Origin: Diplonema japonicum
Lineage: Eukaryota > Protista > Euglenozoa: Diplonemea
DNA length: 64,000 bases
Reading direction: 5' to 3'
NCBI GenBank assembly: GCA_964019335.1
Contig: OZ025711.1
Location: forward strand, 186,001-250,000
Under the pieces are notes generated by a model, which saw nothing but the letters and a program-made list of their open reading frames with translations, made no database searches and had not been told where the DNA came from. This document shows positions 1 to 28,318 of this stretch, piece by piece; position 1 is the stretch's first letter; every line of letters starts with the position of its first letter. Both the position numbers and the translations under genes were made by a program.

Positions 1-3000
1 ACAAGGCTTCACCTCGCAGCCCGAGGTCGACGCGTTCCACTGGCAACCCGTTTCCGCCGTGCACGTGGTGACGGTGTCCCCTGCACAAACTGCTTTGCGG
101 TAGCAGGTCTCATCGCTAGAGTCCCACCCGTTCACGCACTCATTCACAACGTCCTGGTTGCAGGTCGTCTCGTTGCAGTGCATCACACACGGCGACGTCC
201 CGCACGACAGCTGATTCCACGAGCACCCCACATCCTTCATGCAGTTCTTCTTCGTGGTGTAGGCGTTGCACGGCTGGTGTTTCCCCCCGGCCACCCCCAT
301 CGCGATCGAGGAACCGAAGTCCGTCGCGGGGTCGCACAATTGCGTCAGCGGGCTGCTGCTCGAGGCGAGCTCGTCCATGTCCACGTTCACGAAGTGCTTG
401 TCGTGCGGGGACGAGGTGATCGGCTTCAGTGCCTCCTCCGCGTCCGTGTCCACCTTCGTGTGCGACGCGAACCTCCTCACCACGATTCCGAACACCTCGG
501 CACTGACAGAGTCAAGCTTTGCCTTCGCATCCTCCAGGTACGCCTGGTCCTGGAGCTGCCCGTCAGTGATGACGTACACAGCCCTCCTCCTCCCGTCAGT
601 GGGGGAGCTCGACAGGATGCTGGCCGCCATCTGCAGACCGAGGTTCACATAGGTTCCCTTCTCCATGAAGTTCGCCTCGTGCCAGTCGAGGTCCGCAGAG
701 AGCTCCGCGAAGTCGCCCGACAGCCTCCCAGCTGCACCGACACCGGCGGGGGTCTTGATCGCAGACCCGGCAATAGGTGTCTTCGTGAGGGGCGCTGTGG
801 CAACGCCGCTGAACTGCACGAAAGCGACGCGGATCTTCCTGGAGGTAGGGTCTGTGGTCACGGGGGCCCCCGCCTTCTCCCCGCTCAAGGGCAATCCCCC
901 TACCCACGCCCTCAGCATCTCCACCATCCCGTAGAAGCCGTGCGGGTGGCGCCCGAAGACTTGGCTCATCGATGCCGACCCGTCGAACACAACCACCAGG
1001 TCCAACGTGGGGCACGTCCCGTACTTCTGGTCCACGCAGGTCTTGTCCCCCGAGAGCCAGAAGCAGCCGGGCTCCTTGTGGCACGCGCACTGCTCCTTAA
1101 GCATCCCGCACTCCTTCTCCTTGCAGATGCTGGTTGCAGTGTCCGTCAGGCACGCGGCGTCTTGGTTGCACTCGTCCTCGTTGCAGATGCTCGTCTCCAT
1201 GTTGCAGTACTTCCTGCAGTACTTCACCTCGCAGGCACCCGGGGCGATCGCCGTGCTCCACTCGCAGCTGTCGTCTGCCATGCAGAGCTTCTCGTTCCCG
1301 TACTGCTTGCACGGGGCGGGCACACATTTGTTGTTGCTGTTCCACACGCACATCCCCGGCTCCGTTGTCTCGCACGCCGCCTGGTTCCCGTAGTTGCATT
1401 TCTTCACCTCGCACTCCACAGCATCCACGTTCCACGCGCACTCCAAGTCCAGGTTGCAACTGTCCATGTTGTCGTACACGCACGGCTTCTTCTTGCAGTC
1501 CTGCTTCACGTTGTCCCACACACACACAGCGGGGTCTGCGAGGCAGCCCTGCTCGTTGTCGTGCTTGCACTCTTTCCCGATGCACACGCTGTTCTTCCAT
1601 TCGCACTCTGCGTCGACAACGCACTCCGCTTGCCCTGGGTACTTGCACACCTCCTCCTTCCCGCAAGAGTTCACCGTTCCGTTCCACTTGCACAGGTTCA
1701 CCGTGTCGGCCGTGCACTTTGCGCTGTCGCAGTGCTCAAGGCACGGCGAGTCCGCGCACGACAGGGTCGCATCGAACCACACGCAGCCGGTATCCTTGTT
1801 GCAAGAATCCTTCATAGAGTGGAGCTGGCAGGGCTGCCTCCCCTCCGCAACCACCCCGACGTACTTGCCCCAAGCCGCATTCGGGTCGCACAACCCGTTC
1901 AGCGAGGTCGCGATCTCGTCCACCTGCACGTTCACGATGTGGCCGGTCTTGGGGTCAGACACCAGGGGTTGCAGAGTCTGCTGCGCCTTCTCGTCGAGGG
2001 TGGTGTGCGTGTCGAAGGGGCGCACCACAAGGCCGAAGACCTGCACCTGCGCCTGATCCAGCTCCGCCCTCGCTGTCTGGTACTTGTCCGCGTCATCGAG
2101 CTCGCCGTCCGTCACGATGATCAGCACCCGCTTCCTCCCGTCCACGGGCGAGGTGCGGAACAGGCTGACAGCCTTCTGCAAGCCCGCGAGGAGGTAGGTG
2201 GTCTGCGGGGTGGGCTGCGTCAAGAGACTGCCCCCCATGAAGTTGGCCTCCTGGAAGGTGAGGTCCGCCTCCACTTCCGACAGGGAGCCGGTGAAGCGCC
2301 CCTCGCTGGTCCCGGTTCCAGTGGCCGTGAGGGCCTGCCTGCTGTCGGACGGGGCCCAGCTTTCACTTCCCGCAAACTGCACGAAGGCGAGGCGCACGGC
2401 CTGCGAGTTCGCAGCCGGGACGGCAGTGGCTCCTGCCACCTCCCCACTCAGGGGGAGGGTCTGTGCCCAGTCTCGCACAACCTCCACAAGGGCGTAGAAT
2501 CCCTGGGGGTGGCGCCCGAACTTCCTCTCCATCGACACCCCTCCGTCCAAGAGCACCACCACGTCGAGCGTCGGGCACGTCCCGTAGCGCTGGAAGGTGC
2601 AGTGCGGCTTACCGGGGGCGGTGCTGTAGAAGCAGTCCGGGTCAGCCTCGCAAGCACACTTGTCAGTCAGCTTGTTACAGTCCTTCTCCCCGCACTTCGT
2701 CCCCTCCCACATGCACGCCCTCTCGCTGTTGCACGCGTTCTCACTCCCGTACGCCCTGCAAGGACCGACACTGCAGACTGCAGGAGACTGCTTCACGTCC
2801 CAGTGACAACCCTCCCCTTCCTCGTTGGCGTTGCAGCACCTCTCATCCACGTACGCCGTGCAGGTTTTCATTGCACAAGCGGATCCGCTCCACCCGCATA
2901 GGGCGTCGGAGGTGCACTCTGCAGCCGTCGAGTAGTCGCAAGGTTTGCGCACGCACATCGCAGGGATCCCCGTCCCGACGCATGCGACGTCCCACAGGCA

Positions 3001-21000: not shown

Positions 21001-24000
21001 CCCGAAGGTCTGTACACCCTCTGCAGCAAGAATAGCACCAGCGGGCCCCAGGGAGGACCTGTCCTGGATCATGCCATCTGTGAAGATGAGGAGGATCTTC
21101 TTCCTGTAAGCGGGGGAAGACTTGAAGGTCTCCCCTGCAAACTCCTCTGCCTCCTTCACCAGCGTCTGCGGTCGGCGCTTCTCGCCCTCGTGCCAGTCCA
21201 AGTCAGCAAGGAGCTGCGCTTTGTTACCGGTGAGCTTCCCGCATTTGTCGGCGGGGCGGGGAGGGGTTTTCCCCTTCGTGTTCATGCTGCTCGTGGTGGG
21301 GATGCCGTCGCCATCTGAGCCCACAGCAGGGCTGCAAGCGCAGGCGGGGCACTCCGCCAGCCTCACTCCTTGGTCCCACTCGCTGAACCCAACCCTCACC
21401 CTTCCGTTGGTGTCGGTCGAGGTCACGCCGGCCGCTTCCCCAGTGAGGGGGAGCGCCTGCACCCAGTCCCTTAGGGCCTCCATGAGCCCCTCGAAGCCGT
21501 TGGGGTGCGTCCCGAACCTGTTGTTCATCGATGTTGACCCGTCGAAGGCCACCACCACGTCCAGGTCCGGGCACTGCGTGAAGTGCTGGTCCCTGCACAC
21601 AGGGGCGGTAGGCACAGAGCGGTCCACCACGCACCTCGAGTCCGCTTGGCAGTCGCACATCCTGTCGGGGCCCATCGCAGGATTGTTGTATGAGTCGCAC
21701 GTCTTGTCTACACACTTGTTGTTCGCGGAGTCCCACATGCACGTCCCCTTCGGGTCGGCATTGCAGCTCGCGTCGTCGGTGAACGTCTTGTAGCAGTACT
21801 TTTCCTTGCAGCCCTCGCACCCCGTGGGGTCCCAGTGGCAGTCCGTGTCGTGGTCGCAGATCGCTTCCGTCGCGTGCTTGTAGCACTTCGACTCCTCACA
21901 GGTGGAGGTTGCCGCGGTCCACTTGCAGGCGCTGTTGGAGATGCACGCATTCTCCGTGTTCGCACCGACACAGTGCTGCTTGTGGCACACCTTGCTGCCT
22001 GCGTCCCATTCGCAACCATCAGCGCTATTTTTGCAGGTTGTATCGGTCGTCTCCCTACACACTTTCTGCGCACAGGTGTTGGTGTCGCACTTCCAGTCGC
22101 AGGCATCGCTCACGTGGTTCAAGCAGTCAAGCTTGTCCGTGATCGTCGTGCAGTCCGGGTCCTTCTCTTTGCACTTAAGTGTGGCGGGGTCCCATTGGCA
22201 GTCGCCGTCCACGTCACAGGTCCCCTGCGTAAAGTGCAGGCACTTCTTGGGGACACAAGTCGCTGGGGTTGCCGTAGTGTCCCACATGCACATGTCATCA
22301 GGGTCTGTCTCGCACGCGTTCTTGTCAGGGTAGTTGCAAACCTTCCTCTGACACTTATCAGTGTCCCAGAAGCAGTCGTTTGCCGTGTCCTGCTCGCAAG
22401 GAACCTCTTCGCAGTGCTCTTCGCAAACGGTGGCACCGCAGTAGCCACTCCCCACGGGGTTGCTCGATCCCGCGGTGCAGGAGACTGCACCACCAGACAG
22501 CTTGCAGTTTGCGCAGGTCATCCCTGCAGAAACCTGGGCAGCAGGGAGCTCAAGGCAGTTGAGGTTCGTGCACCCGTTGCCCGGACACGAAGTAGGGGCA
22601 GGGGTCTTCCAGTTACACGCCTGGTCAGACCTGCACTCGAGTTTTACGCCCCACTTCGAGCAGGGGACAGCGGAGGACTGAGCCGGGGGGGCTGTGTTGT
22701 TCGCGCTGTTCTGGTTCTGGGCTTGCTGCCTGATAGCGGACCCGAATCTCCCCGCAGGGTCGCAGAAGTCGTTGAACACCTCCGTGAGCATGTCGTCCAA
22801 CGGCACGTTCACGAAATGGTCGTCGTGGGCGTCGGAGGTTACCGGCTTCAGGGTCTCCTCAGCATCGATGTCAGCCTTTGTGTGGGCAGCGGTCTTCCTC
22901 ACAACCACGCCAAAGGTTACGACTCCCTCAGCGTCGAGTTTCTGCCTGATAGCAGGGATCTCTTGGCTCTTCTGGGGTTCCAAAGGGTTCATCTGCCCGT
23001 CCGTGATAATGACAAGGACGTGTGCACGGTGCGCGGGAGAGCCGTGGAAGATGTCGACCGCATCATCAAGGGCTGCCGCCATGTAGGTGAGGGAGCCCAT
23101 GTAGTTGGCCTCATGCCAGTCAAGATCGTTCTCCAGCTCATTCAGGTCACCAGTAAGCTGTCCGTTCGAGCAGATCCTTCCTGCAGGGAGCCGCGGCTGG
23201 GTACAGCTTCCCCAGTTCTTCCACCTGTCACAGCCGTCTGCTCCGTTCTTGCACACCCAGTACTCGTTCTCGATGGAGAATTGCACGAAGGCGATACGGA
23301 AAGTCCCACCCTTGACCGCGGAGTTGATCCCAACAGTGTTGTCCTCTCCGGTGAGGGGTAGTGTCCTCACCCAGTCTCTCAGCATCTCGAGCATCGCATA
23401 GTATCCGTGGGGGTGCGTCCCGAACCTTGCCCCCATGGAACCAGAGCCGTCGAGCACGAAGACCACGTCGAGGTCAGGACAGCTGGAGACCTTGGTGTCC
23501 TTGCACTTGGCGGCAGGGGCGGTCACAGCAGGGTCCCAGTAGCAGTTCGTGTCACGAACACAGTCGCAGTTCTTCGTGTGGTCGGAGCAGCTTGCAAGGG
23601 CACAGTACGGTCCCTTCGAGTCAGTGCCGGTTTTGCAGGCAGGGTCGCTCATGCACGCAGCATCGTCGATGGTCCCCATCTTCGAGGGCGCATCTCCAAG
23701 GCCAGGGTACTGCGTGTTGTGGTTCTTCGTGCAGGTGGTGGGCTGGCAGGTCGGCGGAGTCGTGACCGAGTCCCAGTGGCACCTGGGGTCGTGGTCGCAC
23801 TTCACCTCGTCGTCCTTGTACTGCGGACAGTAGTCAGTCACGCATTCGTTGTTGTCCCAGTGGCACACGTCGCTGTTTCCGCAGTCTGCCTGGTTCAGGG
23901 GCTTACACTTGTCCTCGGTGCATGTCGAGGATGCGGGGTCCCACACGCAGTTGTCGCAGTCCTTGCAATCCACCTGCGCCTTCGCGGGTGTGCACTTCTT

Positions 24001-27000
24001 CTCCTTGCACATGGTTCCCAGCCACTCGCAATCCGAGTCTACAGAGCAGGTCCCGGAATCAGGGTATGAGCACTTCGTGTCCCTACAGGTCGTGCTGTTG
24101 CAGTCCCACTCGCAGCTCGGGTCGTTCTTGCACACAGCGGGATCGGTCTTGGTGTCACAGGTGGGGATCTGTTTGCAGACAGGGGGGTCGAGCGAGGTGT
24201 CCCACTGGCAGTTGTTCGTGCTGTTCAGACATTTCTCCTGCACAAAGATCGAGCCGCAGGGCTTCGGGTCGCACTTGCTGCCGTCCCACTTGCACAGCAG
24301 GTCGGGGTCGTTCTCACAGGCATTTTGGTCCGTGTACTCGCACACTTTCCTCTCGCATGTCTCGCCGGGGGTCTTCCAGCCGCATGCCGCATCGGCGTCA
24401 CAGCATTTCTTGTCGCAGCATTTCGCGCAGTGGGTCTCCTCGCACGTCCCGTCGATCGACGACTGGACAGAAGCCCCGCAGATGACGGTTGCCCTCTGAA
24501 GCTTGCACTTGCTGCAGTCATAAAGCCCCTTGTACTGCTGCGGGATTCCCTGACAGTTCAGCTCGGGGCACCCTGTTGCCGCAGGACAACTTGCCAGCCT
24601 CGGGGTCTTCCACTCGCACAGCGAGTCGGCGTTGCACTCGTCCTTGAAGCCCCACGTTGAGCATTGGTAATGCTTCGCGTCAACCGGGGGGATCAGGGTT
24701 TTTCCGAACTTCGAGTTGGGGTCGCAGAAGGGCTCCAGCACCTGCCCCGGAATCTCGTCCAGCATGAGGTTCATGAAGTGGTCGTCCTTCGGGTCTGTCA
24801 CCAGAGGCTTCAACTTCGCCTCCGCATTGTCGTCCTGGAAGGTGTGGTAGGAGAACCTCCTCATCACGATCCCGAACACCACCACATCCTCGTCACGGAG
24901 CTTCTGCTGCGCGTCGTCCAGCATTCCGGGGTAGGTGGGCTTCCACTGCGAGTCGCAGCCGCTGGGGCATCGTCCACAGGAGGTACCACTGCACGCGTCA
25001 CCGTCGTAGTCAGTGAGACCACCGTCAGCGATAATTATTACCACGTGCTTCCTGTGTGAAGGGGACTGGCTGGGGAGGAAGGTGTGGTCCGCCACGTCCA
25101 AAAGAGCATCGTGGAGGTAAGTCCAGTGCGACTGGTAGTTCGCCTCATGCCAGTCGATGTCTCCCATCAGCTCATTGAGGTTACCAGAGAGGAGACCGTC
25201 CGTGCACTTGCCCACTGCGCAGCCCGTGGGATGGTCCATCGCAGGCGTCGCCTCTGCCCTCGAGAACTGGATAAAAGTGAGACGGAATCCACCGCCCTTC
25301 ACATTCGATGCGCCACCAACCGTGTGGTCCTCCCCCGTGAGGGGAAGCGTCTTCACCCAATCCCTCAATGTCTCCAGCAGCCCATAGAAGCCGTGCGGGT
25401 GGTTCCCAAAGGACCTCGACATTGAGCCAGATCCGTCAAGCACAAAAGCAACATCCAGATCGGGGCACGTGGAGTAAGAGGTCTTCGCGCAGTGGTCGTT
25501 GCCCGAGCCAGTCGTGTCCACAACCCACGAGCACTCGGGGTCAGCCACGCACCCACACTTCTTCTTGGGTGTGTTGTACTTCTCACAAGTGGCGGCCGTG
25601 CAGTGAGCGGGGGTAGAGCTTCCGTCCCACATACAGTTCGTGTTCGTTTCGCATGTTCCTTGCGTCGTGTGCACACCGCACTCCGTCGGGGTACAGATCG
25701 GAGGGTTGATTGAAGCGTCCCAGTGACACACCTTGTCTTGGTCACACGTGAGTTCGTCGGGGTGCTTGGGGCAGGGCGCTTCCACGCAGGTCGTCCTCTG
25801 GTCGTCCCACTTGCAGTAAGGGTCGTTCTCGCACAGTTGCACCGTGGTGTGCTTGCATTTTTCTTCCGTGCAGTACTCAACAAGGGTCGACGGAGGGCCA
25901 GCAGGGGGAGGGGTCTGAAGGGGGACCCACTGGCACCCAGACTCGGCCAAACACTTCCCTTCAGAGGTCTGCAAACACTTCTTCGGGTAGCAGGTGGGCG
26001 TCTTCGTGGAGTCGAAGTCGCACACATTGAGGAAGCAGTAATCGGGGTTCCCAGCGGGCGGTGTGCACGGAGAGGGCATCTCCACCGCGACTGCGGTGCA
26101 CGACTGCTGGTCGGTGTGCGTCCTACATGGGTTCTCCACGCACGTGTTCGCGGTGCTCCACATCACGTTCCACAGGCACTTCTCATCCTGCTGGCATGCA
26201 GCGACGTCTGTGTGCGCAGCGCAGCCAGGGGGCTCCCTACGGCAGTCGTTTCCGTCCCAGGCACATCCGGCCTTCGCGACGCAGGTCTGCTGTGTGCAGA
26301 GCGGGTAGCACTCGGACAGCTGGCACAATGGAGTTTTCGAGGAGTCCCAGTTGCAGGTGGTATCGGCCATGCACGAAGTTTCCGTGGTCAGGTCCCCACA
26401 GACTGCGGTTTTTGTAATGCTGGGGTTGTGGCAGCCCCCCCTCGAGGAGTCCCACTGGCACTGGGGGGAGGACTGGATGCACTTGCACTTGTCGGTCACG
26501 TCGGCGCAGACGAGGGTCTGGCACTTCTTGTCCCCTGCAATGTTGGTGTTCCAGTAGCACGGACCGTCGGCGGTATTGTCAGCGTTGCAGTCCGCTTCCG
26601 TGAGGTGCGTCACCGCGCAGTAGTTGTCCACGCACTCAGGTGGGCTCTTCGTCGTGTCCCAGTCGCACGTCACGTCGCCTTCGCAGGTCGTTTCGTCCCC
26701 GTAGCGGTGGCACCCGACCTCCACACACTTCGCGGGGCTCTGTGTTGTGTCCCACTTGCAGGAGTCGGCGGGGAGGCGGGCTTCGCACGCCCCTCGGTTC
26801 TTGTAGGAGTCGCATCCAGCCACCACAATCTGCGAACCGAACACGTCGTCCTTGTTCATGCAGAGTTCCCCCACACCACCCCACTCGCACACGTAGCCTT
26901 CGATGCGGTTGTGTCCGTTCGGGTAGTCGTTCCACCTTCCGTTCCCGTAGTAGTGTCCGTAGTCTTCTCCAGTCGTCGAGCACGTCGCTGGCGAGCAGTC

Positions 27001-27858
27001 CTTAGAGTACTCGTTCGGCTCACCGGACTCCCAGTTCTCGTAAGCTCCCGGAGCGGTCTTGAAGCTTGACCCCTTGCCGGTCCCGATGAGCTGCCCCTGC
27101 CCGCAGTCGGGTCCGGTGCACGGGTTCTTGTTCTCAGGAAGGGGGTAGCCCATGTCACAAGCGGTCCTTGCAGCGCCTGTCAGAGCAAGGTTGTAAGGGG
27201 GGCACCCTTCAGGGCCGGTCAGCCAGCGCCACTCCCCTTCCTTCGCGATGTCTGCTGAACCGATCCAACCCTCTCCGTGCAGCTTCGCCGAGGCGACGTC
27301 CTGCTCGTCCTGCGAGGTGATGGTGACGAGGTAGCCTGCAAGGCCAAGGATGTCCTTCGATTTGTCGGCACACTCGGACTGTGCGTCGTCCCAGTGGCAG
27401 AAACCCCCTGTGTTGCAATTCACGCTGTTCTTCGGGTAGTACTCGTAGAAGTGCCCCGTGTGCGTGGAGTACATGGCGTGACCGAAGTTGTAGGTCAGGC
27501 GACGGGAGGTTCCAGCTCCCGACGTCGACGTGAAGGTCACGGTGGCGATGGCCTGTGCGTACTCGTCGATCGTGGCGGTACCAGACATCTGCAAGATGCC
27601 TGTTGTGGTGTCAAAGTTGGGGGTGATCCCCAGCCCGGCACACGCCCCGCAGGTGAGCGTGTCCGTGGCAGGGTCGAAGCCGTCCTCCACGTCCACCACC
27701 GAGCCGCTGATCTGCGTGTTGCAATTACACCCTGCACCAGGCGTGAAAGTGATGTCCGAGCACTTCACGTCTGGAAATGGCGTCATCGGCACTCCTTGGT
27801 TGTAGAAGGTGGCATAGCACGACGCCGTCAGCGACAGCATCATCAACGGGCGATGCAT
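1..27858 (-). CDS. Giant secreted multidomain adhesin/matrix-like protein (C-type lectin x2, vWA x12, ~32 EGF-like repeats, Cys-rich spacers); >=9,286 aa, 3' end outside window
   Basis: ATG at 27858 (MHRPLMMLSLTASCYATFYNQG, signal-peptide-like). The same frame (first codon base = 0 mod 3) still reads ...CQWNASTSGCEVKPC at position 1. None of the minus-strand ORFs I checked in the track for 1-27858 is in this frame, as expected for a single stop-free ORF running off the edge. Spot translations throughout gave coherent domains. Confidence 0.93.
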   Translation of the reverse strand, partial: MHRPLMMLSLTASCYATFYNQGVPMTPFPDVKCSDITFTPGAGCNCNTQISGSVVDVEDGFDPATDTLTCGACAGLGITPNFDTTTGILQMSGTATIDEYAQAIATVTFTSTSGAGTSRRLTYNFGHAMYSTHTGHFYEYYPKNSVNCNTGGFCHWDDAQSECADKSKDILGLAGYLVTITSQDEQDVASAKLHGEGWIGSADIAKEGEWRWLTGPEGCPPYNLALTGAARTACDMGYPLPENKNPCTGPDCGQGQLIGTGKGSSFKTAPGAYENWESGEPNEYSKDCSPATCSTTGEDYGHYYGNGRWNDYPNGHNRIEGYVCEWGGVGELCMNKDDVFGSQIVVAGCDSYKNRGACEARLPADSCKWDTTQSPAKCVEVGCHRYGDETTCEGDVTCDWDTTKSPPECVDNYCAVTHLTEADCNADNTADGPCYWNTNIAGDKKCQTLVCADVTDKCKCIQSSPQCQWDSSRGGCHNPSITKTAVCGDLTTETSCMADTTCNWDSSKTPLCQLSECYPLCTQQTCVAKAGCAWDGNDCRREPPGCAAHTDVAACQQDEKCLWNVMWSTANTCVENPCRTHTDQQSCTAVAVEMPSPCTPPAGNPDYCFLNVCDFDSTKTPTCYPKKCLQTSEGKCLAESGCQWVPLQTPPPAGPPSTLVEYCTEEKCKHTTVQLCENDPYCKWDDQRTTCVEAPCPKHPDELTCDQDKVCHWDASINPPICTPTECGVHTTQGTCETNTNCMWDGSSTPAHCTAATCEKYNTPKKKCGCVADPECSWVVDTTGSGNDHCAKTSYSTCPDLDVAFVLDGSGSMSRSFGNHPHGFYGLLETLRDWVKTLPLTGEDHTVGGASNVKGGGFRLTFIQFSRAEATPAMDHPTGCAVGKCTDGLLSGNLNELMGDIDWHEANYQSHWTYLHDALLDVADHTFLPSQSPSHRKHVVIIIADGGLTDYDGDACSGTSCGRCPSGCDSQWKPTYPGMLDDAQQKLRDEDVVVFGIVMRRFSYHTFQDDNAEAKLKPLVTDPKDDHFMNLMLDEIPGQVLEPFCDPNSKFGKTLIPPVDAKHYQCSTWGFKDECNADSLCEWKTPRLASCPAATGCPELNCQGIPQQYKGLYDCSKCKLQRATVICGASVQSSIDGTCEETHCAKCCDKKCCDADAACGWKTPGETCERKVCEYTDQNACENDPDLLCKWDGSKCDPKPCGSIFVQEKCLNSTNNCQWDTSLDPPVCKQIPTCDTKTDPAVCKNDPSCEWDCNSTTCRDTKCSYPDSGTCSVDSDCEWLGTMCKEKKCTPAKAQVDCKDCDNCVWDPASSTCTEDKCKPLNQADCGNSDVCHWDNNECVTDYCPQYKDDEVKCDHDPRCHWDSVTTPPTCQPTTCTKNHNTQYPGLGDAPSKMGTIDDAACMSDPACKTGTDSKGPYCALASCSDHTKNCDCVRDTNCYWDPAVTAPAAKCKDTKVSSCPDLDVVFVLDGSGSMGARFGTHPHGYYAMLEMLRDWVRTLPLTGEDNTVGINSAVKGGTFRIAFVQFSIENEYWVCKNGADGCDRWKNWGSCTQPRLPAGRICSNGQLTGDLNELENDLDWHEANYMGSLTYMAAALDDAVDIFHGSPAHRAHVLVIITDGQMNPLEPQKSQEIPAIRQKLDAEGVVTFGVVVRKTAAHTKADIDAEETLKPVTSDAHDDHFVNVPLDDMLTEVFNDFCDPAGRFGSAIRQQAQNQNSANNTAPPAQSSAVPCSKWGVKLECRSDQACNWKTPAPTSCPGNGCTNLNCLELPAAQVSAGMTCANCKLSGGAVSCTAGSSNPVGSGYCGATVCEEHCEEVPCEQDTANDCFWDTDKCQRKVCNYPDKNACETDPDDMCMWDTTATPATCVPKKCLHFTQGTCDVDGDCQWDPATLKCKEKDPDCTTITDKLDCLNHVSDACDWKCDTNTCAQKVCRETTDTTCKNSADGCEWDAGSKVCHKQHCVGANTENACISNSACKWTAATSTCEESKCYKHATEAICDHDTDCHWDPTGCEGCKEKYCYKTFTDDASCNADPKGTCMWDSANNKCVDKTCDSYNNPAMGPDRMCDCQADSRCVVDRSVPTAPVCRDQHFTQCPDLDVVVAFDGSTSMNNRFGTHPNGFEGLMEALRDWVQALPLTGEAAGVTSTDTNGRVRVGFSEWDQGVRLAECPACACSPAVGSDGDGIPTTSSMNTKGKTPPRPADKCGKLTGNKAQLLADLDWHEGEKRRPQTLVKEAEEFAGETFKSSPAYRKKILLIFTDGMIQDRSSLGPAGAILAAEGVQTFGIVLTRGNPNFLDQRNLDALKEIVTDPKDSHALMMQIDEAHKVLDDFCDPNSVFGALITSGSTTKPNTEPPCDSIQSIPDCTARATCQWNSITVACEDHPCFKHCGETDCVADTTNKCKFNNGTLQCEKTVCKDHLNQKECVDNDCKWDAAKNPRCDEGPCQATDQAACNNLGKQCTWDTTIQPDPKCVETPCYYDNQTTCEVDTDCEWDAACPDAADQKCVPKRCSQPDHQSQAGCVKDTWCVWTSSLTCELGKCAKYPTEKCCDHDDNCHWDITSSPPVCGEKYCPKTYPTQATKDQCDADSKCMWDSGKQACVEEDCSKLDKCPCRAHPDCYWDAAHNKCTDAKYGECPTMDVIMLMDGSGSMDAWFGNHPHGFYGLIEILRDWAKTLPLTGELAGTNTGPGPAKGGLRLGFVQFSGSNPWWWFSGTPKAIQTPSGTGSSGHLSGDLTQINQDLDWHEANYMGDGTMIEKGLTMVGDMFDASHQHAVRPRILIIFTDGKIYDPNSLGPARTVLDQEDVQTFGIVIRKQQAHTKADVDAEATLKPITSDPHDDHFQNLMLDEISTKVLGDICDPNGKFGHLIVKNSPSTQAGVHAPCPNHADSHLCNADPGCEWHAASNECQDSPCIAHCDEQSCIKDTANLCKWNGTECWKETKCAYTDQTQCVNSPDLCVWDNGVCVLPPCTPNKNQADCEADKDGCAWVNQNGQDVCIVEPCSSTYQSVCSSDPACKWDYPLCGNTTQLQCMPKGCDYFAAKGDCDADVHCVWDAAASTCKDRVCAQFRDERCCDKDPICKWDATTAPAVCSQKKCPAIQKQPKCDEQSDCMWNSTTNKCVDLDCSKFPDMCPCNQHDKCYWKPGAGFAGTGACVAIEFGECPTLDIVLVLDGSGSMSAKFGNHPHGFDALMEMMRDWIETLPLNGEDASVGIKSKKDNGGVRVGIVQFSGWNNWRSEARKTPGGKGSGGRLTGKLQQLEDDVDWHEDNYMGDGTMIEEGLTMAADMFHASPVDGRQRVLFIFTDGQIYDPNSLSGARAELDKEGVQVFGIVVRKATKHTKADLDAEKTLKPITSDPHDDHFKNVMIDEVPDLMKGICDPNGPWGHLIVKDPPQPSSGVHLPCPDYQTQGTCKKDPGCIWSDVGSVCLNSPCLLHCNGSACQGDPSNNCTWVNGSICTNAPDPTCDCAYTTGDPVYNEKMCKADAMCVWDAANSVCQHDECAAGQPGNLTCGAVNQLCMDPTPAPCTDDYYCDCVPPATRDPKTQPGQVAAVCVLDECAVDCPTCAGTTCSDKNQDCFDPTPTVTSLSDWTCTCKPPYTGVAVANAAVCQVDECKDQTCSTCAKTTCSDKNQICHDPDTTVLSDWTCTCPPPSNQSAVAAAVVSCDFDECTIHKDTCENADQTCHDPDQSVTGDWTCTCKAPSNGTATAQVAWCELDECVKTCPSCANTTCTGENQLCDDPNKASHSTGDWTCTCQNPFTGSATAAAAICKLDECSALCTGTTCANATCSNVNQTCHDPDFTKLGDWTCNCPPPSKQPPSPQQPVMGCEVNECDLHKVVCENQGQICEDPDQLVADDWKCKCVPPMNGTATAQAADCTIDECVASCATCANDTCSSEGQTCEDPDISMHSTADWTCTCPPPFTGVAIANSATCLLDECAANCSEPSCAGTTCSAKNQTCHDPDTSTLNDWTCTCPPPSQQPPVVGAPVTGCEENECDKMKQICENVGQTCDDPDQLTPNDWECKCTPPMNGTGVAKPAECTLDECAADCVGPTCANTTCSDANQVCNDPDTAVHSTGDWTCTCPSPYAGVAIGSAAVCRIDECVETCPTCADNACSNATQICNDPDTSKLSDWTCSCPPPAQKPSQVGGPVTPSCDVDECDLHKDTCESQQQTCFDPDQAKAGDWQCKCTPPMNGTATAQPAECTIDECVVSCATCANDTCSSKSQTCEDPDTSMHSTSDWTCTCPPPTTGKAVANSAECVIDECVETCPTCSNGVCSAEGQTCHDPNVAANSTGNWICTCPPPSTGFATGKAATPCVVDECKDPDNEKKCADAGQECVDPNPSLGSRNDWECHCIVPPAIKTASAVMNPAECEYPGECKTDPEAKKCVAAGHICDDPNTDPMSTGDWVCMCPPPSTGTNVTATTPGGVAGMVCETDECVVVCPTCAQTAGSPTNLCTAEGQECRDPDKTKYGDWQCECPTPWTGTPVTGGAANCSLDECVATCPSCSKGACSDEGQTCKDTNTGVHDLNDWICTCPPPGVGSATAKPATCVCDECKEADQKCSAAGQICFDPNTACDSTKDYTCECKAPYSGTATAQAATCEVNECKEKNATCTAVGQICNDPDLTKLDDWECKCPPPSTGMAVGQAASTCKLDECVETCPTCAGTTCSDADQTCTDPNTDASSTGDWICTCKPPAANNSATGKPAVCICDECVGDTLCAGANQSCYDANTACNTPSDFVCECEPPMIGNATGSVAMCSLDECEINSATCIAQGQECNDPDHTKAGDWECKCKPPSVGNATAQAAECVYDECKIQDCPTCANNTCGLQDCEDMNTSPTSTSDWVCKCPPPSNHTATGKMAVCDLDECKDPVNAGKCTEACVPGTLDCGQTCYDPNPTTVSTGDWECLCPPPATGKMVAGPVVHCTYNECDEKETVCAAEGQECEDTNQQTLNDWVCECLPPATGNATVRPARCLLDECKVQNCPTCANDTCKSVGQECEDPDTTATSTGDWVCKCPPPSTHQATAKPAVCEIDECDEPQNNCTANCVAPNTPNCEQTCFDPDTSPTSLGDWTCSCPPPTKGKVVAHAAMCTVDECVEHGATCTAEGQTCTDLNTSRLNDWECVCTDPAKGSAVAQKATCVLDECVEDCDTCSKNTCKDAGQTCEDPNTSESSKSDWICKCPSPSKNTATGKPATCEVDECKENGWKCTADCKGALNCAQLCFDPNTNSTSLDDWKCVCQPPSTDSAVTKAAVCTVEPCIHDNEPACEQDPDGCEWSLLPTPVCKPIPCQHTKEVDCKSETGCEWLVYSGASTNAGTGAVSYEVLVPVKPFPAATCDASCSCTAQNAVFVRIEGGYVNGKDSLACGGCAAAGVTVNWQAAEGSLTVSGGSGVSGDKLAEIVASIEFTTSSTDGGKRSLTWNFGTTQNTAAAATACGGMVDLVGGVCVTEKCDYDTDAKCEADPFCDWVGGTTDPCVIAPCVLYPNEKECSKDPDCRFDVSSSPAMCKEKPCRAFKGPAECNAEDECMWNATQTKCVEKECSKFNDDRCKCHAEDRCYWDVRSTVPKCVESKYGQCPVLDVVMLLDGSGSMSEAFGRHPHGFYAMMEMIRDWVNTLPLTGEDHTVGKASTAPNGGLRMGIIQFSGPVPEAVKTPVGVGSSGSLTGDLTELQGDIDWHEANYIQGSTFIAMGLNWAGTMFQFSPSTRQKVLIIVTDGAIKDTASLAPAKAVLTAEGVKIFGVVLRKAAAHTQEDLDAEAALKPITSDPHDDHFMNVLIDDMPDQVLNGICDPNSKWGQLLMPGASSENQAGMHKPCPQHLVQMECTTDPGCVWSSVGLSCVDSPCVAHCDSTKCTADTVNHCEWKVVNGTTDPSCWVETICAYNDETTCEADDQCDWDASKPDCVERPCNQQTETECEADPKGCEWTAATKTCAEKPCKHTVEADCGADALCEWDACAGVAGGGACQKKSCDPTVFTDEVSCTKDTRCQWVSGVTGFTCVQELCAIHSGERCCNTEVDCHWDISVSPAQCSVKHCAKMNANPAKCDSDSPCVYEGSKCVEKECGKLAECECRKDADCYWNGDKDFCTPFQFGQCPTLDLVLLLDGSGSMSQSFGRHPHGFDAIMEMVRDWVTTLPLSGEKGIVGVNSQANSGKVRVGIIQFSGINAQGADPGRADAQATPAGIGSSGSLTGDLAELNADIDWQETNYYGGGTMIAKGLTDVAQMFHASPNDGRQRVLIIITDGQVFDPDTQAVLQARGELDKERVQVFGVVVRKATAHTAIDDLAEQTLKPMVSVPKDDHFQNLMIDEVPTLVLGEICDPNGKFGRLVVGTNGSSSTGVNKPCKQHTLMGACNADSGCAWYDATLSCADTPCMQHCEEIPCKNDTTNKCAWDSTKSLCQKEPQVGCDSLSAGECPKNPKCELSKDNTTCVDKKCLHDTEQGCVADPDKCVWNNIDQECTEKPCNHPDEATCESDRLCDWNNGNNPLSYSKGVKMSPLNLTCNPTTTCMNGCAGMVNGAAVSIDSADYVKGKDTLECAGCPALGMKTEWSAETGSLLLTSADGQEKSLEKFTEALNKVTFATTSAAGNPRGITWNYGQGVYDARTGHYYRYYSSNTVCQTTGGATTAGCTWEDAKQACAAKAFLGISGYLMTATTDLETEVARGRIAAEGWMGASATNGAWTWSTGPEATTPISSYDNWMTGEPSAVNGDGYIFPNGEWSSVAKTSDKAVLGYACEWGTTSGPACTGSVGNVIVNAGGCAEEKCTETSRTECVADPYCDWVVNTTACVQKPCTDVMEELPCNKKEGCHWSPSISPAMCVEEPCAKLKDSPTCNADNNCAWEDGKKMCVEKNCNDLTKCLCVEDPKCFWKATGTGGSCVKNTYGACPTMDIVVLVDGSQSMSQSFGHHPHGFFALMEMLGDWIQSLPLSGEVATVGAASQANSGKVRVAVVQFSGHPQFFSPPNTWSGPVVESVAVSPVGVGTAGRLSGASAELKSDVDWHESNYLEAGTYIAKGLKRAANIFASSSPVDGRQRVLMIFTDGMIEDAGADKDIMVQARQDLDGLSVQTFGIVVRRFAQHTQTDIDAEATLKPIVSAPQDEHFMNLQIDEVPDQALNGLCDPNGPWGHLIVTPQTTQAGVHQPCLNYLAKTTCVADKGCTWSDVLTSCLDSVCVPHCDQPTCEGETSTKCVWDGSLEECFKKPICPYSDEVNCNNDQECKWDSNKCIEKPCYYPDETSCIADTEADCVWSTVTKKCSEKPCNYNNTADCRADSGCQWEDTCKEPEDQMCIVKPCMHSNETACKEDVMCAWNASGCAVATCAHYPDEKCCNRDDGCHWNVQQAPAVCSQLPCRLLGSEGTCNADRNCMWEGGSSACLEKSCGKYTTRCPCEADPDCFFVAGSNHCTFQRYGTCPTLDVVVLLDGGVSMERKFGRHPQGFYALVEVVRDWARTLPLSGSAAGAATPANNNAARLAFVQFAGSSLWPAGDAKQVLSSTGTGTSEGRLTGVLSEVEKDLEFQEDNFMGGNAARQPAPQTTYLLAGLQKASSLFKAGPVDGRRRVLIVVADSPLNDKDKYQTVMADLAASQVVVFGATVRPFTAQSAGDLQADADLKEVVSDPKDGHFVSVELDQLATSLNGLCDPNSQWGAFIAATAVDREPCNLRVEKTACNKDAGCVWFDTTLSCGDSPCLTHCEAPVCVADTANRCVWNGASCEKEEVCKYPDLAACEADPECEVDKGTCIGKKCKHDTEQGCVADPDSCVWNNLDQTCGEKPCNYDNLDQCTLDSKCAWKPLVPECLPKLCTYVNQTACETTEPGMCVWENSNDKCVPAPCKQYQSEIECKLDEGCDWTSECEPKYCERYAGDSGACDSDGLCMWDETKKKCVDKECGAFQNDTCRCHKDADCFWDKGVCKTAKFGECPTLDIVLAVDGSASMTQTFGRHPHGFYGLMEVLKTWTGKLTLSGEKAGTPTAATGKTRIGVVQFSGKPAIKIPGTDLVDGAQKTPTGTGSGGRLSGDRSEVDADLVWQETNFMEGGTYIAAALDVSADMFQASPRDGRKRVLLIFTDGQIQDADKLVDARKRLEQEEVITFGIVVRRFDAHTQTDIDAEATLKPITSEPHAEHYYNLLLDEISDTLDGLCDPNSMWGKYIVETAQAGVHKPCGNYNEKEACNGDVGCAFRDVLAACVDTPCIKHCSEGLCKSDTANKCFWKADESVCYKEEGCSGYKKETDCNVDTTCAWREDKCVDKPCDYPDENSCTADSTYDCEWSSKDGTCTEKPCQYTEEAACKGDAKCLWDVACVGTGIPAMCVRKPCDYSTAAECTSDALCGWSGSACAMKTCTAYVDERCCNANEEGEGCHWDVKQSPAVCSVGPCRAYGSENACNSERACMWEGTKCGEKDCNKLTDKCACEADPDCFYSTAPGKPHCTFQRYGTCPTLDVVVLLDGGVSMERKFGRHPQGFYALVEVVRDWAQTLPLSGEVAGATAVPAANSQAVRLAFVQFAGSESWAPSDSRQALTATGTGTSEGRFTGSLSEVEADLTFQEANFMGGSLLTQPTPQTTYLLAGLQKAVSLFRTSPVDGRKRVLIIVTDGELDDADKYQTARAELDQAQVQVFGLVVRPFDTHTTLDEKAQQTLQPLVSDPKTGHIVNVQVDEIATSLNGLCDPNAAWGKYVGVVAEGRQPCQLHSMKDSCNKDTGCVWFDATLSCADSPCLEHCDSAKCTADTVNLCKWNGTVNSCGKEEVCKYPGQAECVVDAECEWKNSVCIGKECKHDNEQGCLADPAVCVWDNVKQDCKKKPCVYDNMDSCNLDLECAWNVDAVECEVKKCNYGNQAACETTEPGMCVWNSNNKCVPAPCKQYGNEKLCMADDSCEWSTAIAPGACEVKYCRKYCNMETSICNEDECNQDAACLTDTATSICKEKECGMLKEQCACHKEPGCFWLSGDKTCVDQKYGTCPTLDLVVVFDGSASMSQVFGRHPHGFYGMVEMLRAWVGGLPLSGEKAGAPVTTDPTSRKIRVAFVQFSGVATAPLTKTPIAGSAIKTPAGVGAAGRLSGDFAELSADLDWHEANFMEKGTYVNLGLQMAASILSSSPTDGRRRAVYVITDGQLQDQAYLEDAKAKLDSVSAEVFGIVVRRFASHTKVDTDAEEALKPITSSPHDKHFVNVDMDELASSSSPLTQLCDPATDFGSSIAMGVAGGKHQPCNAYTTKKNCMKDVGCSWNQLSCGTSPCVMHCNETTCNQDVVNECVNGWDSSDETCYRKAVCAGDTVTTCTAETGCQWNASTSGCEVKPC
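390..11140 (-). repeat. Array of 7 vWA domains with Cys-rich spacers (within giant ORF)
   Basis: DGS[GQA]SM or DGGVSM plus FG[RH]HP[HQ]GF motifs near 11100, 9550, 7180, 5600, 4085, 2540 and 980; period about 1.5-1.6 kb. Confidence 0.88.
7650..8380 (-). other. Second beta-sandwich plus C-type lectin-like module, with degenerate sugar-binding motifs (within giant ORF)
   Basis: GKDTLECAGC...VTFATTS...RGITWNYG...TGHYYRYY...CTWEDAKQAC...GISGYLMT...GWMGA...WTWSTGPE...YDNWMTGEPS...GEWSS...GYACEWG. EPN becomes EPS and WND becomes WSS. Confidence 0.8.
12130..17350 (-). repeat. ~32 tandem EGF-like Cys-rich repeats of ~50-57 aa (within giant ORF)
   Basis: Recurrent C.DP[DN]......DW.C.CPPP..G......A.C..DEC motif. 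I counted about 32 D[WFY]xCxC cores between 12150 and 17270, spaced mostly ~150-200 nt. Confidence 0.85.
17710..25470 (-). repeat. Array of 5 vWA domains separated by ~30-aa Cys-rich (C..CxW..C..KxC) repeats (within giant ORF)
   Basis: CP[DT][LM]D-hydrophobic-DGS[GT]SM..FG[NT]HP[HN]G motifs near 25430, 23445, 21535, 19915 and 18340, each followed downstream by a hydrophobic strand ending [TA]DG. Confidence 0.88.
26880..27810 (-). other. N-terminal beta-sandwich-like module plus C-type lectin domain with intact EPN/WND motifs (within giant ORF)
   Basis: Translation: SVVDVEDGFDPATDTLTC...TGILQMSGTATIDEYAQAIATVTFTSTS...RRLTYNFG, then TGHFYEYY...CHWDDAQSEC...GLAGYLVTITSQDEQ...GWIGSADIAKEGEWRWLTGPE...YENWESGEPNEY...GRWNDY...GYVCEWG. 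Boundaries approximate. Confidence 0.85.
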
Positions 27859-28318
27859 CTTAGGAGCTGTGCGCACTCCTAATGAAGGTATTTATTTTTT
27901 TTTTTTGCACCCTTCCTTCTTTTTCTTTAAGTGTTTCCTAAATGATGTTATTGAATTTTAGAAAAAAATGAAACGAAGAATAACAACAAATGGTAATTCA
28001 TTTGACGAAAATCTTGGTACACCTGAAGGGTACTTCTTAAGCGGAAAGTGCCTAACACGTGAAGCAGGCTGCACTGCTTTCAATATGTTCTTCAGGTAAG
28101 GAGGTTCGTACAGGGGTCTGTAATCATAGACAGTTGCATCTAGGTCAAGACAGTGTAAAGAGAATAGCCAATAAACATATCAATTAATCGGCTTATAGAA
28201 AATCAAAGACAAGGAAAAGAAGGGAGGAAGTACTTGTCACTCAAGTGGTGTAATCCCGTGGAAGACTGACCAGGAGCCTCCCATTGAAGGAGATTACCAG
28301 CACAAGACGACTCGTGCG

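Follow-up and report, generated by a model that had tools for sequence, protein, structure and literature searches.

The diplonemid flagellate Diplonema japonicum carries a giant gene that is genuine, transcribed and intronless, and that encodes in a single exon of 12,990 codons a type I membrane glycoprotein laid out as head, stalk, transmembrane (TM) helix and cytoplasmic tail. The product is probably a long-reach, lectin-tipped, metal-dependent adhesin of the cell surface, a putative role that is weighed below against three others. The gene was found in a window of 64,000 nucleotides, the whole stretch of DNA that was analysed (C64:186001-250000), and adjoining contig DNA was added to follow its frame past the window edge.

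Gene structure and transcription

One minus-strand frame is without a stop over window positions 1-27891 (9,297 codons), and its first ATG lies at 27858. An open minus-strand frame from this position to the window edge, encoding without introns a protist protein of more than 1 MDa, had been claimed in a first-pass annotation of this DNA. No in-frame stop was found, and the complete ORF (38,970 nt, no internal stop) encodes 12,990 aa with a mass of 1.40 MDa, a pI of 4.6 and 8.8 % Cys. Extension past the window, where a stop and a membrane anchor were sought, yielded both: the frame runs for a further 11.1 kb to C64:174889 with a stop codon at 174886-174888, and one TM helix is encoded. The other two frames of the same strand contain 384 and 324 stops against 0 in the gene frame, and a stop-free frame would arise by chance at p ~1e-182, as computed from base composition. 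GC3 of the giant ORF is 0.83, compared with 0.55-0.71 in neighbouring ORFs. The long plus-strand ORFs over 1-27066 are antisense shadows of the giant gene, as had been suspected of the ORF track.

The 5' end of the transcript is defined by trans-splicing. An RNA contig (run X5) spans 27472-27938 and continues with 20 loose letters, whose reverse complement is TACAGTTTCTGTACTTTATT, and the genomic context at the acceptor is ...TTCTTCGTTTCATTTTTTTCT...TTTAG/G. Followed by GT, the loose-letter tail has 157 occurrences in the genome and none in a reversed control. In the RNA contigs, the spliced leader (SL) is joined at an AG that precedes the ATG by 79 nt. The X5 RNA contigs contain nine variants, five of them in the SL-bearing contig, and all nine agree with copy B, a near-identical inverted partial copy of the gene that terminates at a 200-N Hi-C join. 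The window copy and copy B are virtually identical over about 16 kb, a distance that exceeds the mean HiFi read length, and the local assembly is therefore uncertain. The RNA evidence consists of assembled contigs over the first ~3.5 kb with the variants of copy B, not of the window copy, and for this reason we only infer full-length transcription of the window's own copy. The k-mer depth of RNA contigs at the 5' end of the gene is ~360-980, compared with 31 for the gene upstream; contigs, however, measure depth poorly, and at the 5' end paralogs contribute to it. Features of the gene are collected in Table 1.

Table 1. Features of the giant gene in the window and beyond its edge
Feature	Position in window	Strand	Basis
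Trans-splice acceptor: polypyrimidine tract, then AG (27939-27938)	27938..27975	-	RNA contig and genomic context
5' UTR, 79 nt, without upstream ATG	27859..27937	-	RNA contig, genome
Giant ORF, first 9,286 codons of 12,990	1..27858	-	ORF scan and adjoining DNA
ORF remainder, outside window, to C64:174889	L009:1-10000 + L010:8889-10000; stop L010:8886-8888
Signal-peptide-like N-terminus (MHRPLMMLSLTASCYA)	27811..27858	-	Read by eye from sequence
Pre-lectin beta-domain, aa ~21-125	27484..27798	-	AF2 all-beta, pLDDT 93-98
C-type lectin domain 1, aa ~121-333, EPN...GED...WND, ~60-aa inserted loop	26860..27498	-	Sequence and fold
First run of 4-Cys 'C..C..CxW..C' repeats, ~33 aa each	25468..26829	-	Iterated HMM
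Super-repeats 1-5 (VWA + 4-Cys stalk)	17374..25467	-	Pfam VWA, VWA_2; MIDAS alignment
VWA cores of super-repeats 1-5	24820-25467, 22834-23481, 20926-21573, 19306-19953, 17728-18375	-
32 EGF-like units, aa 3496-5256, 49/56/58-aa triplets	12091..17373	-	Cys pattern, AF2
Beta-domain copy 2 without lectin, aa ~5320-5440	11539..11901	-	Self-comparison
Super-repeats 6-7	8584..11523; VWA cores 10489-11136, 8938-9585	-	Pfam, MIDAS alignment
Second head: beta-domain + degenerate CTLD-like, aa ~6426-6760	7579..8583	-	Self-comparison
Super-repeats 8-12	1..7578	-	Pfam, MIDAS alignment
VWA cores of super-repeats 8-12	6568-7215, 4993-5640, 3475-4122, 1930-2577, 367-1014	-

The lectin head

The whole head (aa 1-345) consists of a beta-domain followed by a C-type lectin domain (CTLD). 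It begins, as had been proposed, with an ATG and a signal-like N-terminus, recognized by eye, which is conserved among the paralogs, the C14 and C99 copies having a more hydrophobic version. The pre-lectin beta-domain has no Pfam match and is present 10-40 times in some homologous proteins. The lectin module of the first-pass annotation has proved to be a true CTLD by PDB sequence matches and by fold. It matches CLEC4F, CD23 and Mincle in the PDB at about E 1e-4 (phmmer, 1.4e-4 and below). Foldseek gives 77 matches at E<=1e-3, CTLDs throughout among the matches listed. A VIA-wide search superposes the domain on CL-K1 with Z 14.6 (121 residues, rmsd 2.0 A); 57 chains reach Z>=8, and the best 50 of them (Z>=9.4) are all CTLDs. 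Pfam Lectin_C (PF00059) does not match the isolated head even at E<=10, nor do the beta module and the second head give a lectin or EGF match in Pfam at E<=10. Since Pfam gave no lectin or EGF call for these modules, PDB sequence searches and AF2 and fold searches were relied on. The same beta-domain and CTLD head is found in a bacterial-type adhesin (PKD/DUF11), whose head matches Pfam Lectin_C.

Judged from its residues, Ca2+ site 2, the predicted sugar site, is complete in the first head (GEPN...GED...WND), and EPN...GED...WND is kept in ten of the 12 family heads. The outer-pair cysteines can be assigned to SEC...GYVCEW, and the inner-pair positions after GED and WND appear to be free of Cys.

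The central EGF-like array

About 32 EGF-like repeats had been claimed, and the array has exactly 32 units, which are EGF-like by Cys pattern and predicted fold only. They follow the motif CxxDEC..C.DP..DWxCxCPPP and contain 6 Cys in 49-aa units or 8 Cys in 56-58-aa units, together with a CxC; an aromatic residue precedes C4. An extra disulfide is predicted in about two thirds of the units. The unit-length pattern is conserved across paralogs. The AF2 model of a triple unit has a pLDDT of 91, and nearly all of its matches in fold searches (Foldseek, VIA) are EGF arrays, e.g., Notch EGF11-13 with Z 4.1, array Z values (<=4.1) being low, as expected for small modules. Single units superpose at an rmsd of 2.2-3.0 A over ~40 aa on the EGF domains of factor VII/X, thrombomodulin and uromodulin. 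Pfam EGF families do not match the central array at E<=10, and a profile of the 32 units finds EGF/fibrillin in the PDB only at a non-significant E of 2-3. On comparison with the cbEGF consensus, the DEC linker and C-x-D are near-invariant, the first acidic position is variable, and the loop leading to the aromatic residue has 6-10 residues, compared with the 4 expected.

VWA domains and the 4-Cys stalk

Five, two and then at least five VWA domains with MIDAS had been counted. Our own alignment gives 18 copies grouped 5 + 2 + 11, five of the last 11 lying inside the window. Pfam VWA (PF00092) scores 165, 267 and 187 bits (cut-off 23.8), in 15 significant stretches with E-values of 1e-48 to 1e-79, and VWA_2 is also matched. 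In the alignment, the predicted MIDAS has the form DxSxS in 14 copies, DxTxS in two and DGGVS in two; the MIDAS Thr is mostly conserved, and the Asp (D of the 'DG' motif) is retained in 15 of the 18 copies.

The VWA domains are separated by a 4-Cys repeat, which was identified by an iterated HMM/profile in ~179 copies protein-wide, with 8-10 copies between adjacent VWA domains. This repeat is the largest component of the protein (~45 %). Each unit is predicted to contain two disulfides and is a short helix plus a hairpin in the AF2 model. The ~179 copies were absent from the module list of the first-pass annotation. A weak lead in Pfam is Paramecium_SA (E 0.018). An ESM Atlas search with the 4-Cys stalk gave no usable match, and a protein search with a 456-aa stalk run found no homologues among proteins of similar length. 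In the PDB, five of nine weak matches of the 4-Cys profile are VSG C-terminal domains, aligned Cys-for-Cys at E 0.05-1.3. The VSG C-terminal domain family PF10659 has no match in the D. japonicum genome and none in control genomes either, so that this search has low power. The Cys-for-Cys matches leave a slim chance that the repeat is homologous to these small domains of trypanosome VSG.

Internal modules and the membrane end

The beta module claimed between the EGF-like array and the second group of VWA domains is present and is a copy of the pre-lectin beta-domain. The second lectin module was also found where it had been placed; its sugar/Ca site, however, is lost (EPS...WSS), and the long loop is absent. 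Self-comparison and domain scans bear out the order of modules given in the first-pass annotation. Beyond the window edge there follow, in order, super-repeats 13-18, an EGF_2 region, a membrane-proximal domain, the TM helix and a 38-aa tail. Membrane-proximal EGF_2 (PF07974) is matched in two stretches with 25.5 bits against a cut-off of 22.1.

The single TM helix is C-terminal, at the opposite end of the protein from the signal-like N-terminus. The 38-aa cytoplasmic tail has an invariant F[DN]DFEM[ED]DG motif and ends with ...RDEDKVN. TM helix and tail are kept in all paralogs, in Rhynchopus and in Namystynia. The tail motif is Y-x-x-hydrophobic in Rhynchopus, Namystynia, D. papillatum and Artemidia, whereas the corresponding position is F in all D. 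japonicum copies. Because F stands where the other genera carry Y, a tyrosine sorting signal in the D. japonicum tail appears doubtful. A protein search with the 370-aa anchor region found no homologues among proteins of similar length.

Paralogs and diplonemid relatives

The D. japonicum genome has about ten similar paralogs, which are nearly equal in length; at 39 kb each, they make up roughly 0.6 % of the 62-Mb genome. Besides the window gene, eight or more loci retain open frames of 12,056-13,165 codons, giving at least nine in all. These paralog loci (at least eight) are 51-97 % identical to the window copy by end probes and have the same architecture unit for unit without a frame break. 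Between paralogs, dN/dS in the EGF-like array is 0.07-0.24 at a dS of ~0.4 to >2. The family shows a weak bias toward chromosome ends.

Conservation of the family extends across Diplonemea, with relatives in five other genera: D. papillatum, Rhynchopus, Artemidia, Namystynia and Hemistasia. In these relatives, including Artemidia motanka, Namystynia karyoxenos and Hemistasia phaeocysticola, the beta-domain and CTLD head is 41-57 % identical; their VWA domains carry the 'FG.HP.G' signature too, and the proteins are likewise rich in Cys. Namystynia also has CxxDEC EGF-like units, and Rhynchopus and Namystynia share the juxtamembrane CCEGL..GE.CLP segment, the TM helix and the tail motif. On the other hand, the deposited models reach only about half the length, some being probably truncated models or transcripts, and the anchors of D. 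papillatum and Artemidia are unlike that of D. japonicum. Transcripts of Rhynchopus euleeides EP01061 encode 5,121-6,951 aa, the 6,530-aa one being labelled a complete ORF. The D. papillatum relative KAJ9442392.1 (4,686 aa) is named 'Halomucin', an automatic label that comes from the source record only; no archaeal protein is present among the homologues whose source or name was checked. In the literature searched, no published description was found of the family, nor of diplonemid VWA proteins, Diplonema halomucin or D. papillatum C-type lectin proteins. The D. papillatum genome paper does not mention the family, and no relative is among the entries of the P. papillatum subcellular-proteomics paper and its supplement tables.

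Comparison with known adhesion systems

The apicomplexan adhesins TRAP, MIC2 and CTRP are likewise type I adhesins of protists with MIDAS VWA (I-type) domains, Cys-rich spacers, one TM helix and a short acidic cytoplasmic tail. The diplonemid protein, however, exceeds them in size more than tenfold, carries 18 VWA domains where they have 1-6, and adds a lectin head and an EGF-like rod. Pfam TSP_1 has no match in it, and its tail is without a subterminal Trp. It is placed outside the TRAP family, although by analogy it may work like TRAP-type adhesins.

Bacterial giant adhesins in which Lectin_C is combined with cadherin, PKD, tandem-95 or MBG have the same head, a beta-domain followed by GH[FY]YE...CTLD, with 27-34 % identity over ~200-330 aa. 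They too reach the megadalton scale and carry their ligand-binding part at the tip of a long repetitive stalk. In concept, they are similar to the Marinomonas ice-binding adhesin with its sugar-binding tip. Bacterial stalks are Ig-like, cadherin or PKD, whereas that of the diplonemid protein is built from VWA, 4-Cys and EGF-like units, and anchoring to the outer membrane/T1SS contrasts with a eukaryotic TM helix and SL trans-splicing. Only the head is in common with bacteria. A wholesale bacterial origin is rejected by SL trans-splicing, the spread across diplonemids and the eukaryotic TM anchor.

The same domain folds are found in animal selectins, lecticans, the cbEGF rods of fibrillin and Notch, and the VWA arrays of collagen VI and matrilin. 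The diplonemid CTLD has EPN/WND, as in collectins and DC-SIGN, and the tandem EGF units are joined by a C-x-[LVI]-D-E-C linker resembling that of cbEGF arrays. The domain order and number are different from those in animal proteins, the EGF units fall below Pfam thresholds, and the diplonemid CTLD has a 60-aa insert and apparently no inner Cys pair, unlike animal CTLDs. The lectin/VWA/EGF combination was assembled independently in a euglenozoan.

Proposed role

The TM helix anchors the C-terminus in the plasma membrane, and the N-terminal lectin head is the part farthest from it. The adhesin that we consider most likely would be a filament reaching out from the cell surface for perhaps a few hundred nm if extended, as estimated from typical module sizes. 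The Ca-dependent lectin tip would bind mannose/GlcNAc-type glycans, the many metal-dependent VWA sites would bind acidic protein ligands, and the result would be multivalent adhesion to the substrate, to prey, or to the mucilage/glycocalyx of the cell itself. Inside the cell, the conserved tail may link the filament to a partner that serves sorting, endocytosis or the cytoskeleton. Cells of D. japonicum glide on surfaces, and starved ones attach firmly via a mucilaginous coat; the species has an apical glycocalyx, a hair coat and tubular extrusomes (PMC5845003).

These coats (PMC5845003) also suit a passive structural fibre, which would build or organize the glycocalyx, hair coat or mucilaginous envelope like a membrane mucin, without specific adhesion, and provide a protective or hydrating layer in which the lectin tip cross-links the cell's own polysaccharide. 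The high GC3, the high k-mer depth at the 5' end and the automatic name of the D. papillatum relative are in keeping with such a fibre. However, the giant protein has no Ser/Thr/Pro-rich mucin region, and purifying selection has preserved most of the 18 MIDAS sites and EPN/WND, which points to ligand binding, so that a purely passive fibre is unlikely. The coat-fibre and adhesin roles are not mutually exclusive.

An endocytic or phagocytic receptor, which would capture glycan-bearing particles or prey by its lectin and VWA sites and be internalized at the flagellar pocket/cytostome through its tail, is quite improbable. The Y-x-x-hydrophobic tail motif of the four other diplonemids would serve such a receptor, and the EPN head resembles those of the animal endocytic receptors ASGR, MGL, CD23 and Endo180; in D. 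japonicum, however, F replaces Y in every copy, and an ectodomain of 1.4 MDa would be unusual as recycling cargo.

It is hardly credible that the ORF is not one gene but an assembly artefact, a pseudogene or adjacent genes sharing a frame, or, as a variant, that it encodes extrusome cargo: the Hi-C join at the end of copy B, the uncertain local assembly over the ~16 kb of near-identity, RNA coverage of only 3.5 kb and the tubular extrusomes of the species (PMC5845003) can be cited in favour, but the same architecture of ~13,000 codons has been assembled independently with intact frames at at least eight other loci, for which reason an artefact is rejected, dN/dS is well below 1, a signal-like N-terminus and a TM anchor lie at opposite ends, and the Rhynchopus transcripts encode thousands of residues (5,121-6,951 aa). 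The C-terminal TM helix and conserved cytoplasmic tail argue against soluble cargo, and on these predicted features a cell-surface adhesin or coat protein is favoured over extrusome cargo.

Implications

Automatic annotation misses genes of this kind, since ORF tracks display only their shadows, or misnames them, as in the case of 'Halomucin'. If the 4-Cys repeat were indeed homologous to the VSG domain, the membrane-proximal module of VSG would descend from a stalk module of a giant adhesin in the ancestor of diplonemids and kinetoplastids, and the weak chromosome-end bias of the family, together with its near-identical, possibly gene-converted copies, would echo contingency surface-gene families. 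A length of 12,990 codons is very long for an intronless eukaryotic gene. The adhesion toolkit of lectin, VWA and EGF modules that is typical of animals arose independently in Euglenozoa, with a head module common to bacterial giant adhesins. For D. japonicum itself, about ten intact 39-kb genes are concrete candidates for lectin-tipped, metal-dependent adhesive filaments with a conserved cytoplasmic handle.

Reading frame and its assembly

The minus-strand frame proposed in the first-pass annotation contains no stop codon from window position 27891 to 1 (9,297 codons), and its first ATG lies at 27858, exactly where the start had been placed. The window corresponds to G000:C64:186001-250000. 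With the adjoining DNA added, this frame stays open to C64:174889 of the same contig and ends at a stop codon (C64:174886-174888), giving an ORF of 38,970 nt or 12,990 codons from the ATG, 40 % longer than the part visible within the window. The other two minus-strand frames of this stretch have 384 and 324 stops, and the probability of finding no stop, computed from base composition, is ~1e-182; the observed ORF is therefore real. GC3 is 0.83 in the giant gene versus 0.55-0.71 in the neighbouring ORFs. The plus-strand ORFs over this region, all in one frame, are shadows of this GC3-rich gene and no genes, as had been suspected.

The genome searched comprises 62.5 Mb in 132 contigs; a HiFi and Hi-C assembly of D. 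japonicum YPF1604 with 62.3 Mb in 118 chromosome-level scaffolds has been published without gene annotation (PMC13598402). An inverted partial copy of the giant gene (copy B, C64:146657-165728) corresponds to C64:194945-214021 with 99.76 % identity. It contains the 5'-most 19 kb of the gene together with 163 bp upstream and ends at a 200-N Hi-C join (copy and join together G000:C64:146657-165928, outside the window; fetched loci L011-L012). The flanks differ, so that copy B is probably a genuine second gene, the 3' part of which is not assembled. About 42 of the 45 differences between the copies fall in the first 2.6 kb, while the other ~16 kb are practically identical, which suggests recent duplication or gene conversion. 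The mean HiFi read (~9.4 kb, from figures in PMC13598402) is shorter than the identical stretch, and the assembly may have mixed up parts of the two copies. The architecture stands regardless, being reproduced at the other loci.

Spliced leader and flanking genes

Four runs were compared over window 24400-30300, three of them DNA-assembly-like and one (X5) RNA-like, only ~3.5 kb of the giant gene being open to RNA inspection. One X5 contig spans 27472-27938 and continues into 20 letters absent from the genome at this place, the reverse complement of which is TACAGTTTCTGTACTTTATT. Followed by G|GT, this sequence occurs 157 times in the genome versus 0 in a reversed control, which fits the 3' end of a spliced leader (SL) exon followed by its donor. 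A polypyrimidine tract leads up to the AG (27939-27938) at the junction, and the 5' UTR of 79 nt has no upstream ATG; the mRNA leader is of the euglenozoan type. RNA of the next gene upstream is covered by a contig that stops at 27981, ~40 nt short of the SL acceptor, which fits the coupled processing known for unidirectional gene clusters in diplonemids (PMC10161547). At nine variant positions the X5 contigs, the SL-bearing one included, agree with copy B in 9/9 cases and with the window's own copy in 0/9, and thus the SL evidence is direct for copy B; SL addition at the window's own copy would follow by identity of the acceptor region. No internal SL end is seen within the ~3.5 kb examined. 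Another SL 3' end with a GT donor, located between the stop of the giant gene and the scaffold gap, belongs either to an SL RNA gene or to an SL-headed retroelement.

The genes in the remainder of the window are of ordinary eukaryotic kinds and lie without exception on the minus strand. The GH3/PAN gene, ~14 kb upstream of the giant gene, encodes a secreted-type carbohydrate enzyme. SLATT and DUF4231 are two-TM effector modules known mainly from bacterial conflict systems, so it is unusual to meet them in a cluster of eukaryotic genes.

Modular architecture

Self-comparison, Pfam and our own alignments agree with the module order originally read from the sequence and extend it past the window edge (see table). 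The protein has a mass of 1.40 MDa, a pI of 4.6, 1,141 Cys and 73 N-glycosylation sequons.

Modules of the giant protein and other features (strand relative to the contig; super-repeat, VWA domain plus 4-Cys stalk)
Feature	Location	Strand	Remarks
Signal-like peptide	N-terminus	-	
Beta-domain 1	aa ~21-125	-	
C-type lectin domain 1	aa ~121-333	-	
4-Cys repeat run	after lectin domain 1, before first super-repeat	-	
Five super-repeats	after first 4-Cys run	-	~520 aa each, VWA + 8-10 4-Cys repeats
32 Cys-rich units	aa 3496-5256	-	
Second beta-domain	aa ~5320-5440	-	without lectin
Two super-repeats	between second beta-domain and second head	-	
Second head	aa ~6426-6760	-	beta-domain + lectin-like domain
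Eleven super-repeats	after second head	-	5/11 inside window
EGF_2 region	past window edge	-	two Pfam matches, 25.5 bits, above cut-off
Conserved domain, ~190 aa	past window edge, after EGF_2 region	-	
Juxtamembrane segment	past window edge, before TM helix	-	CCEGLKLGEACLP
TM helix, 38-aa acidic tail	C-terminus, past window edge	-	one helix
Plus-strand ORF series	window:1-27066	+	378-966 codons; antisense shadows
RPGRIP1-type C2 protein	rest of window	-	
Kinesin	rest of window	-	
HEAT-repeat protein	rest of window	-	
GH3 glycoside hydrolase	window:41727-44135	-	N-terminal PAN domain; Fn3-like domain
1,862-aa ORF	window:55783-61368	-	SLATT_1 + DUF4231
SL 3' end + GT donor	G000:C64:168339-168361 = L010:2339-2361	-	
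Three tandem ~556-aa genes	G000:C13:705204-714712 (L024)		head module alone: signal peptide, beta-domain, EPN/WND C-type lectin

The Pfam Lectin_C model does not match the lectin domain, which three other approaches nevertheless identify as a C-type lectin, in keeping with the lectin module read at first. In phmmer against PDB sequences it matches the CRDs of CLEC4F, CD23, Mincle, SRCL and DC-SIGN (best E 1.4e-4), its second half aligning with CD23 through WxxGEPN...GRWND...VC. An AF2 model of aa 21-480 (pLDDT 89, alignment of 34 sequences) gives 77 Foldseek matches at E<=1e-3, and all among the matches listed are C-type lectin CRDs. An exhaustive VIA search with this model finds 57 chains at Z>=8, the best 50 of which (Z>=9.4) are all CTLDs; the lectin domain fits CL-K1 best (Z 14.6, rmsd 2.0 A over 121 residues, 24 % identity). 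All five ligands of Ca site 2 (EPN, E of GED, ND of WND) are present in lectin domain 1 and conserved in 10 of 12 family heads. In C-type lectins, EPN predicts mannose/GlcNAc/glucose/fucose-type specificity. This domain has a ~60-aa insert and, as read from the sequence, lacks the inner Cys pair. The internal lectin copy has EPS...WSS and lacks the long loop, and therefore probably does not bind sugar; the canonical sugar/Ca site is found at the membrane-distal tip only. Bacterial giant adhesins share the two-domain head, and Pfam calls Lectin_C in theirs. The head module also occurs alone in three tandem genes on another contig.

The VWA assignment holds for 18 domains, which all align well. 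Fourteen have the MIDAS motif DxSxS, and DxTxS and DGGVS occur in two each; most retain the MIDAS Thr, and 15/18 the Asp of the 'DG' motif. The 4-Cys repeat (consensus CxxKPCx8CxxDxxCxWx6CxxKxC) is found by an iterated HMM in ~179 copies of ~33 aa, making up roughly 45 % of the protein, and AF2 folds each copy as a short helix and a hairpin. The repeat has been given no name: only Paramecium_SA is matched in Pfam (E 0.018), and the stalk has no match in the ESM Atlas or in a word-index protein search. Among nine weak PDB matches of the repeat profile, five are C-terminal domains of T. brucei VSG, which align Cys for Cys including CxW at E 0.05-1.3; the reverse test with PF10659 gives 0 matches in the genome and 0 in the controls too. 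Kinship with VSG is no more than a lead.

The central array consists of exactly 32 units in 49/56/58-aa triplets with the invariants C-x-x-[DN]-E-C, Q-x-C-x-D, D-W-x-C-x-C and P-P. The unit-length pattern is identical unit for unit across seven paralogs, and the array is therefore old and stable. The number of EGF-like repeats first estimated is thus correct. Pfam EGF models do not match the array, and its unit profile reaches EGF and fibrillin at E 2-3 only. An AF2 model of one triplet (pLDDT 91, alignment of 45 sequences) retrieves nearly exclusively tandem EGF arrays in Foldseek: DLL1 (E 3.9e-3), followed by EMR2, Notch1, NELL, CD97, fibrillin and factors VII/X. In VIA the triplet spans all of Notch EGF11-13 (Z 4.1), and single units superpose on EGF of thrombomodulin, factor VII/X, megalin and uromodulin (rmsd 2.2-3.0 A, ~40 residues). 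The cbEGF Ca site is matched only partially. From these models, 'EGF-like' is accepted at the level of the predicted fold.

Family, selection and anchor

Probes from both gene ends identify paralogous frames on C61 (13,026 codons), C5 (12,987), C63 (13,017 and 13,035), C111 (13,159 twice, as identical tandem copies), C14 (13,165) and C99 (12,056), a split copy on C11 (4,578 and 8,524) and shorter relatives on C30 and C29. Comparison with seven paralogs over the EGF-like array yields dN/dS of 0.07-0.24, with dS from 0.43 to saturation. That one frame has survived across 39 kb despite this divergence argues most strongly for a single translation unit, against the rival reading that the ORF is 'not one gene'. 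Five of eleven family loci (C5, C11, C61, C63, C99) lie <=31 kb from a contig end, a weak hint of subtelomeric placement (binomial p ~0.02, threshold post hoc).

The TM segment, the tail motif F[DN]DFEM[ED]DG and the juxtamembrane CCEGL.LGE.CLPAAL (L010:8889-9000 (-); same region in L035-L042) are invariant in nine paralogs. The anchor is the same in Rhynchopus (YDGFEMEDG) and Namystynia (YADVDMEGG), and Y-E-x-[FL]-S-M stands in this place in D. papillatum and Artemidia. In other genera the motif starts with Y (Y-x-x-hydrophobic). Smaller ORFs, e.g. five on C26:515565-550360, match the C-terminal part of the anchor probe only (query aa 286-357), so the anchor may be a cassette in shared use. 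The closest relatives of the giant protein are all diplonemid: KAJ9442392.1 of D. papillatum, named 'Halomucin', Rhynchopus transcripts of 5,121-6,951 aa (the 6,530-aa one labelled complete ORF), and others in Artemidia, Namystynia and Hemistasia.

Proposed role

Our literature search found nothing that mentions VWA domains, C-type lectins or 'halomucin' in connection with diplonemids, and the family is absent from the genome paper and the proteome paper of most relevance; sequences of its relatives are already public, uncharacterised. Every domain fold is a known one, and giant modular adhesins as such are familiar; what is specific to this family is its architecture, stalk repeat, anchor cassette and scale.

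With its lectin tip farthest from the membrane, the protein has type I topology; many MIDAS sites are intact by motif, a cytoplasmic motif is conserved, and the protein is under purifying selection. Its most probable role is that of a surface adhesin. Less probably, it would serve as a passive fibre of the coat or as a receptor for endocytic capture, and least probably as extrusome cargo. D. japonicum glides, attaches firmly by a mucilaginous coat under starvation, and has an apical glycocalyx and hair coat (PMC5845003). As an adhesin, the protein would form a filament of a few hundred nm, a length estimated from what EGF, VWA and small disulfide modules usually measure. Its Ca-dependent lectin tip would bind glycans and its VWA sites acidic ligands, so that it would adhere multivalently to substrate, to prey or to the coat of the cell itself, and its cytoplasmic tail would connect to a cytosolic partner.
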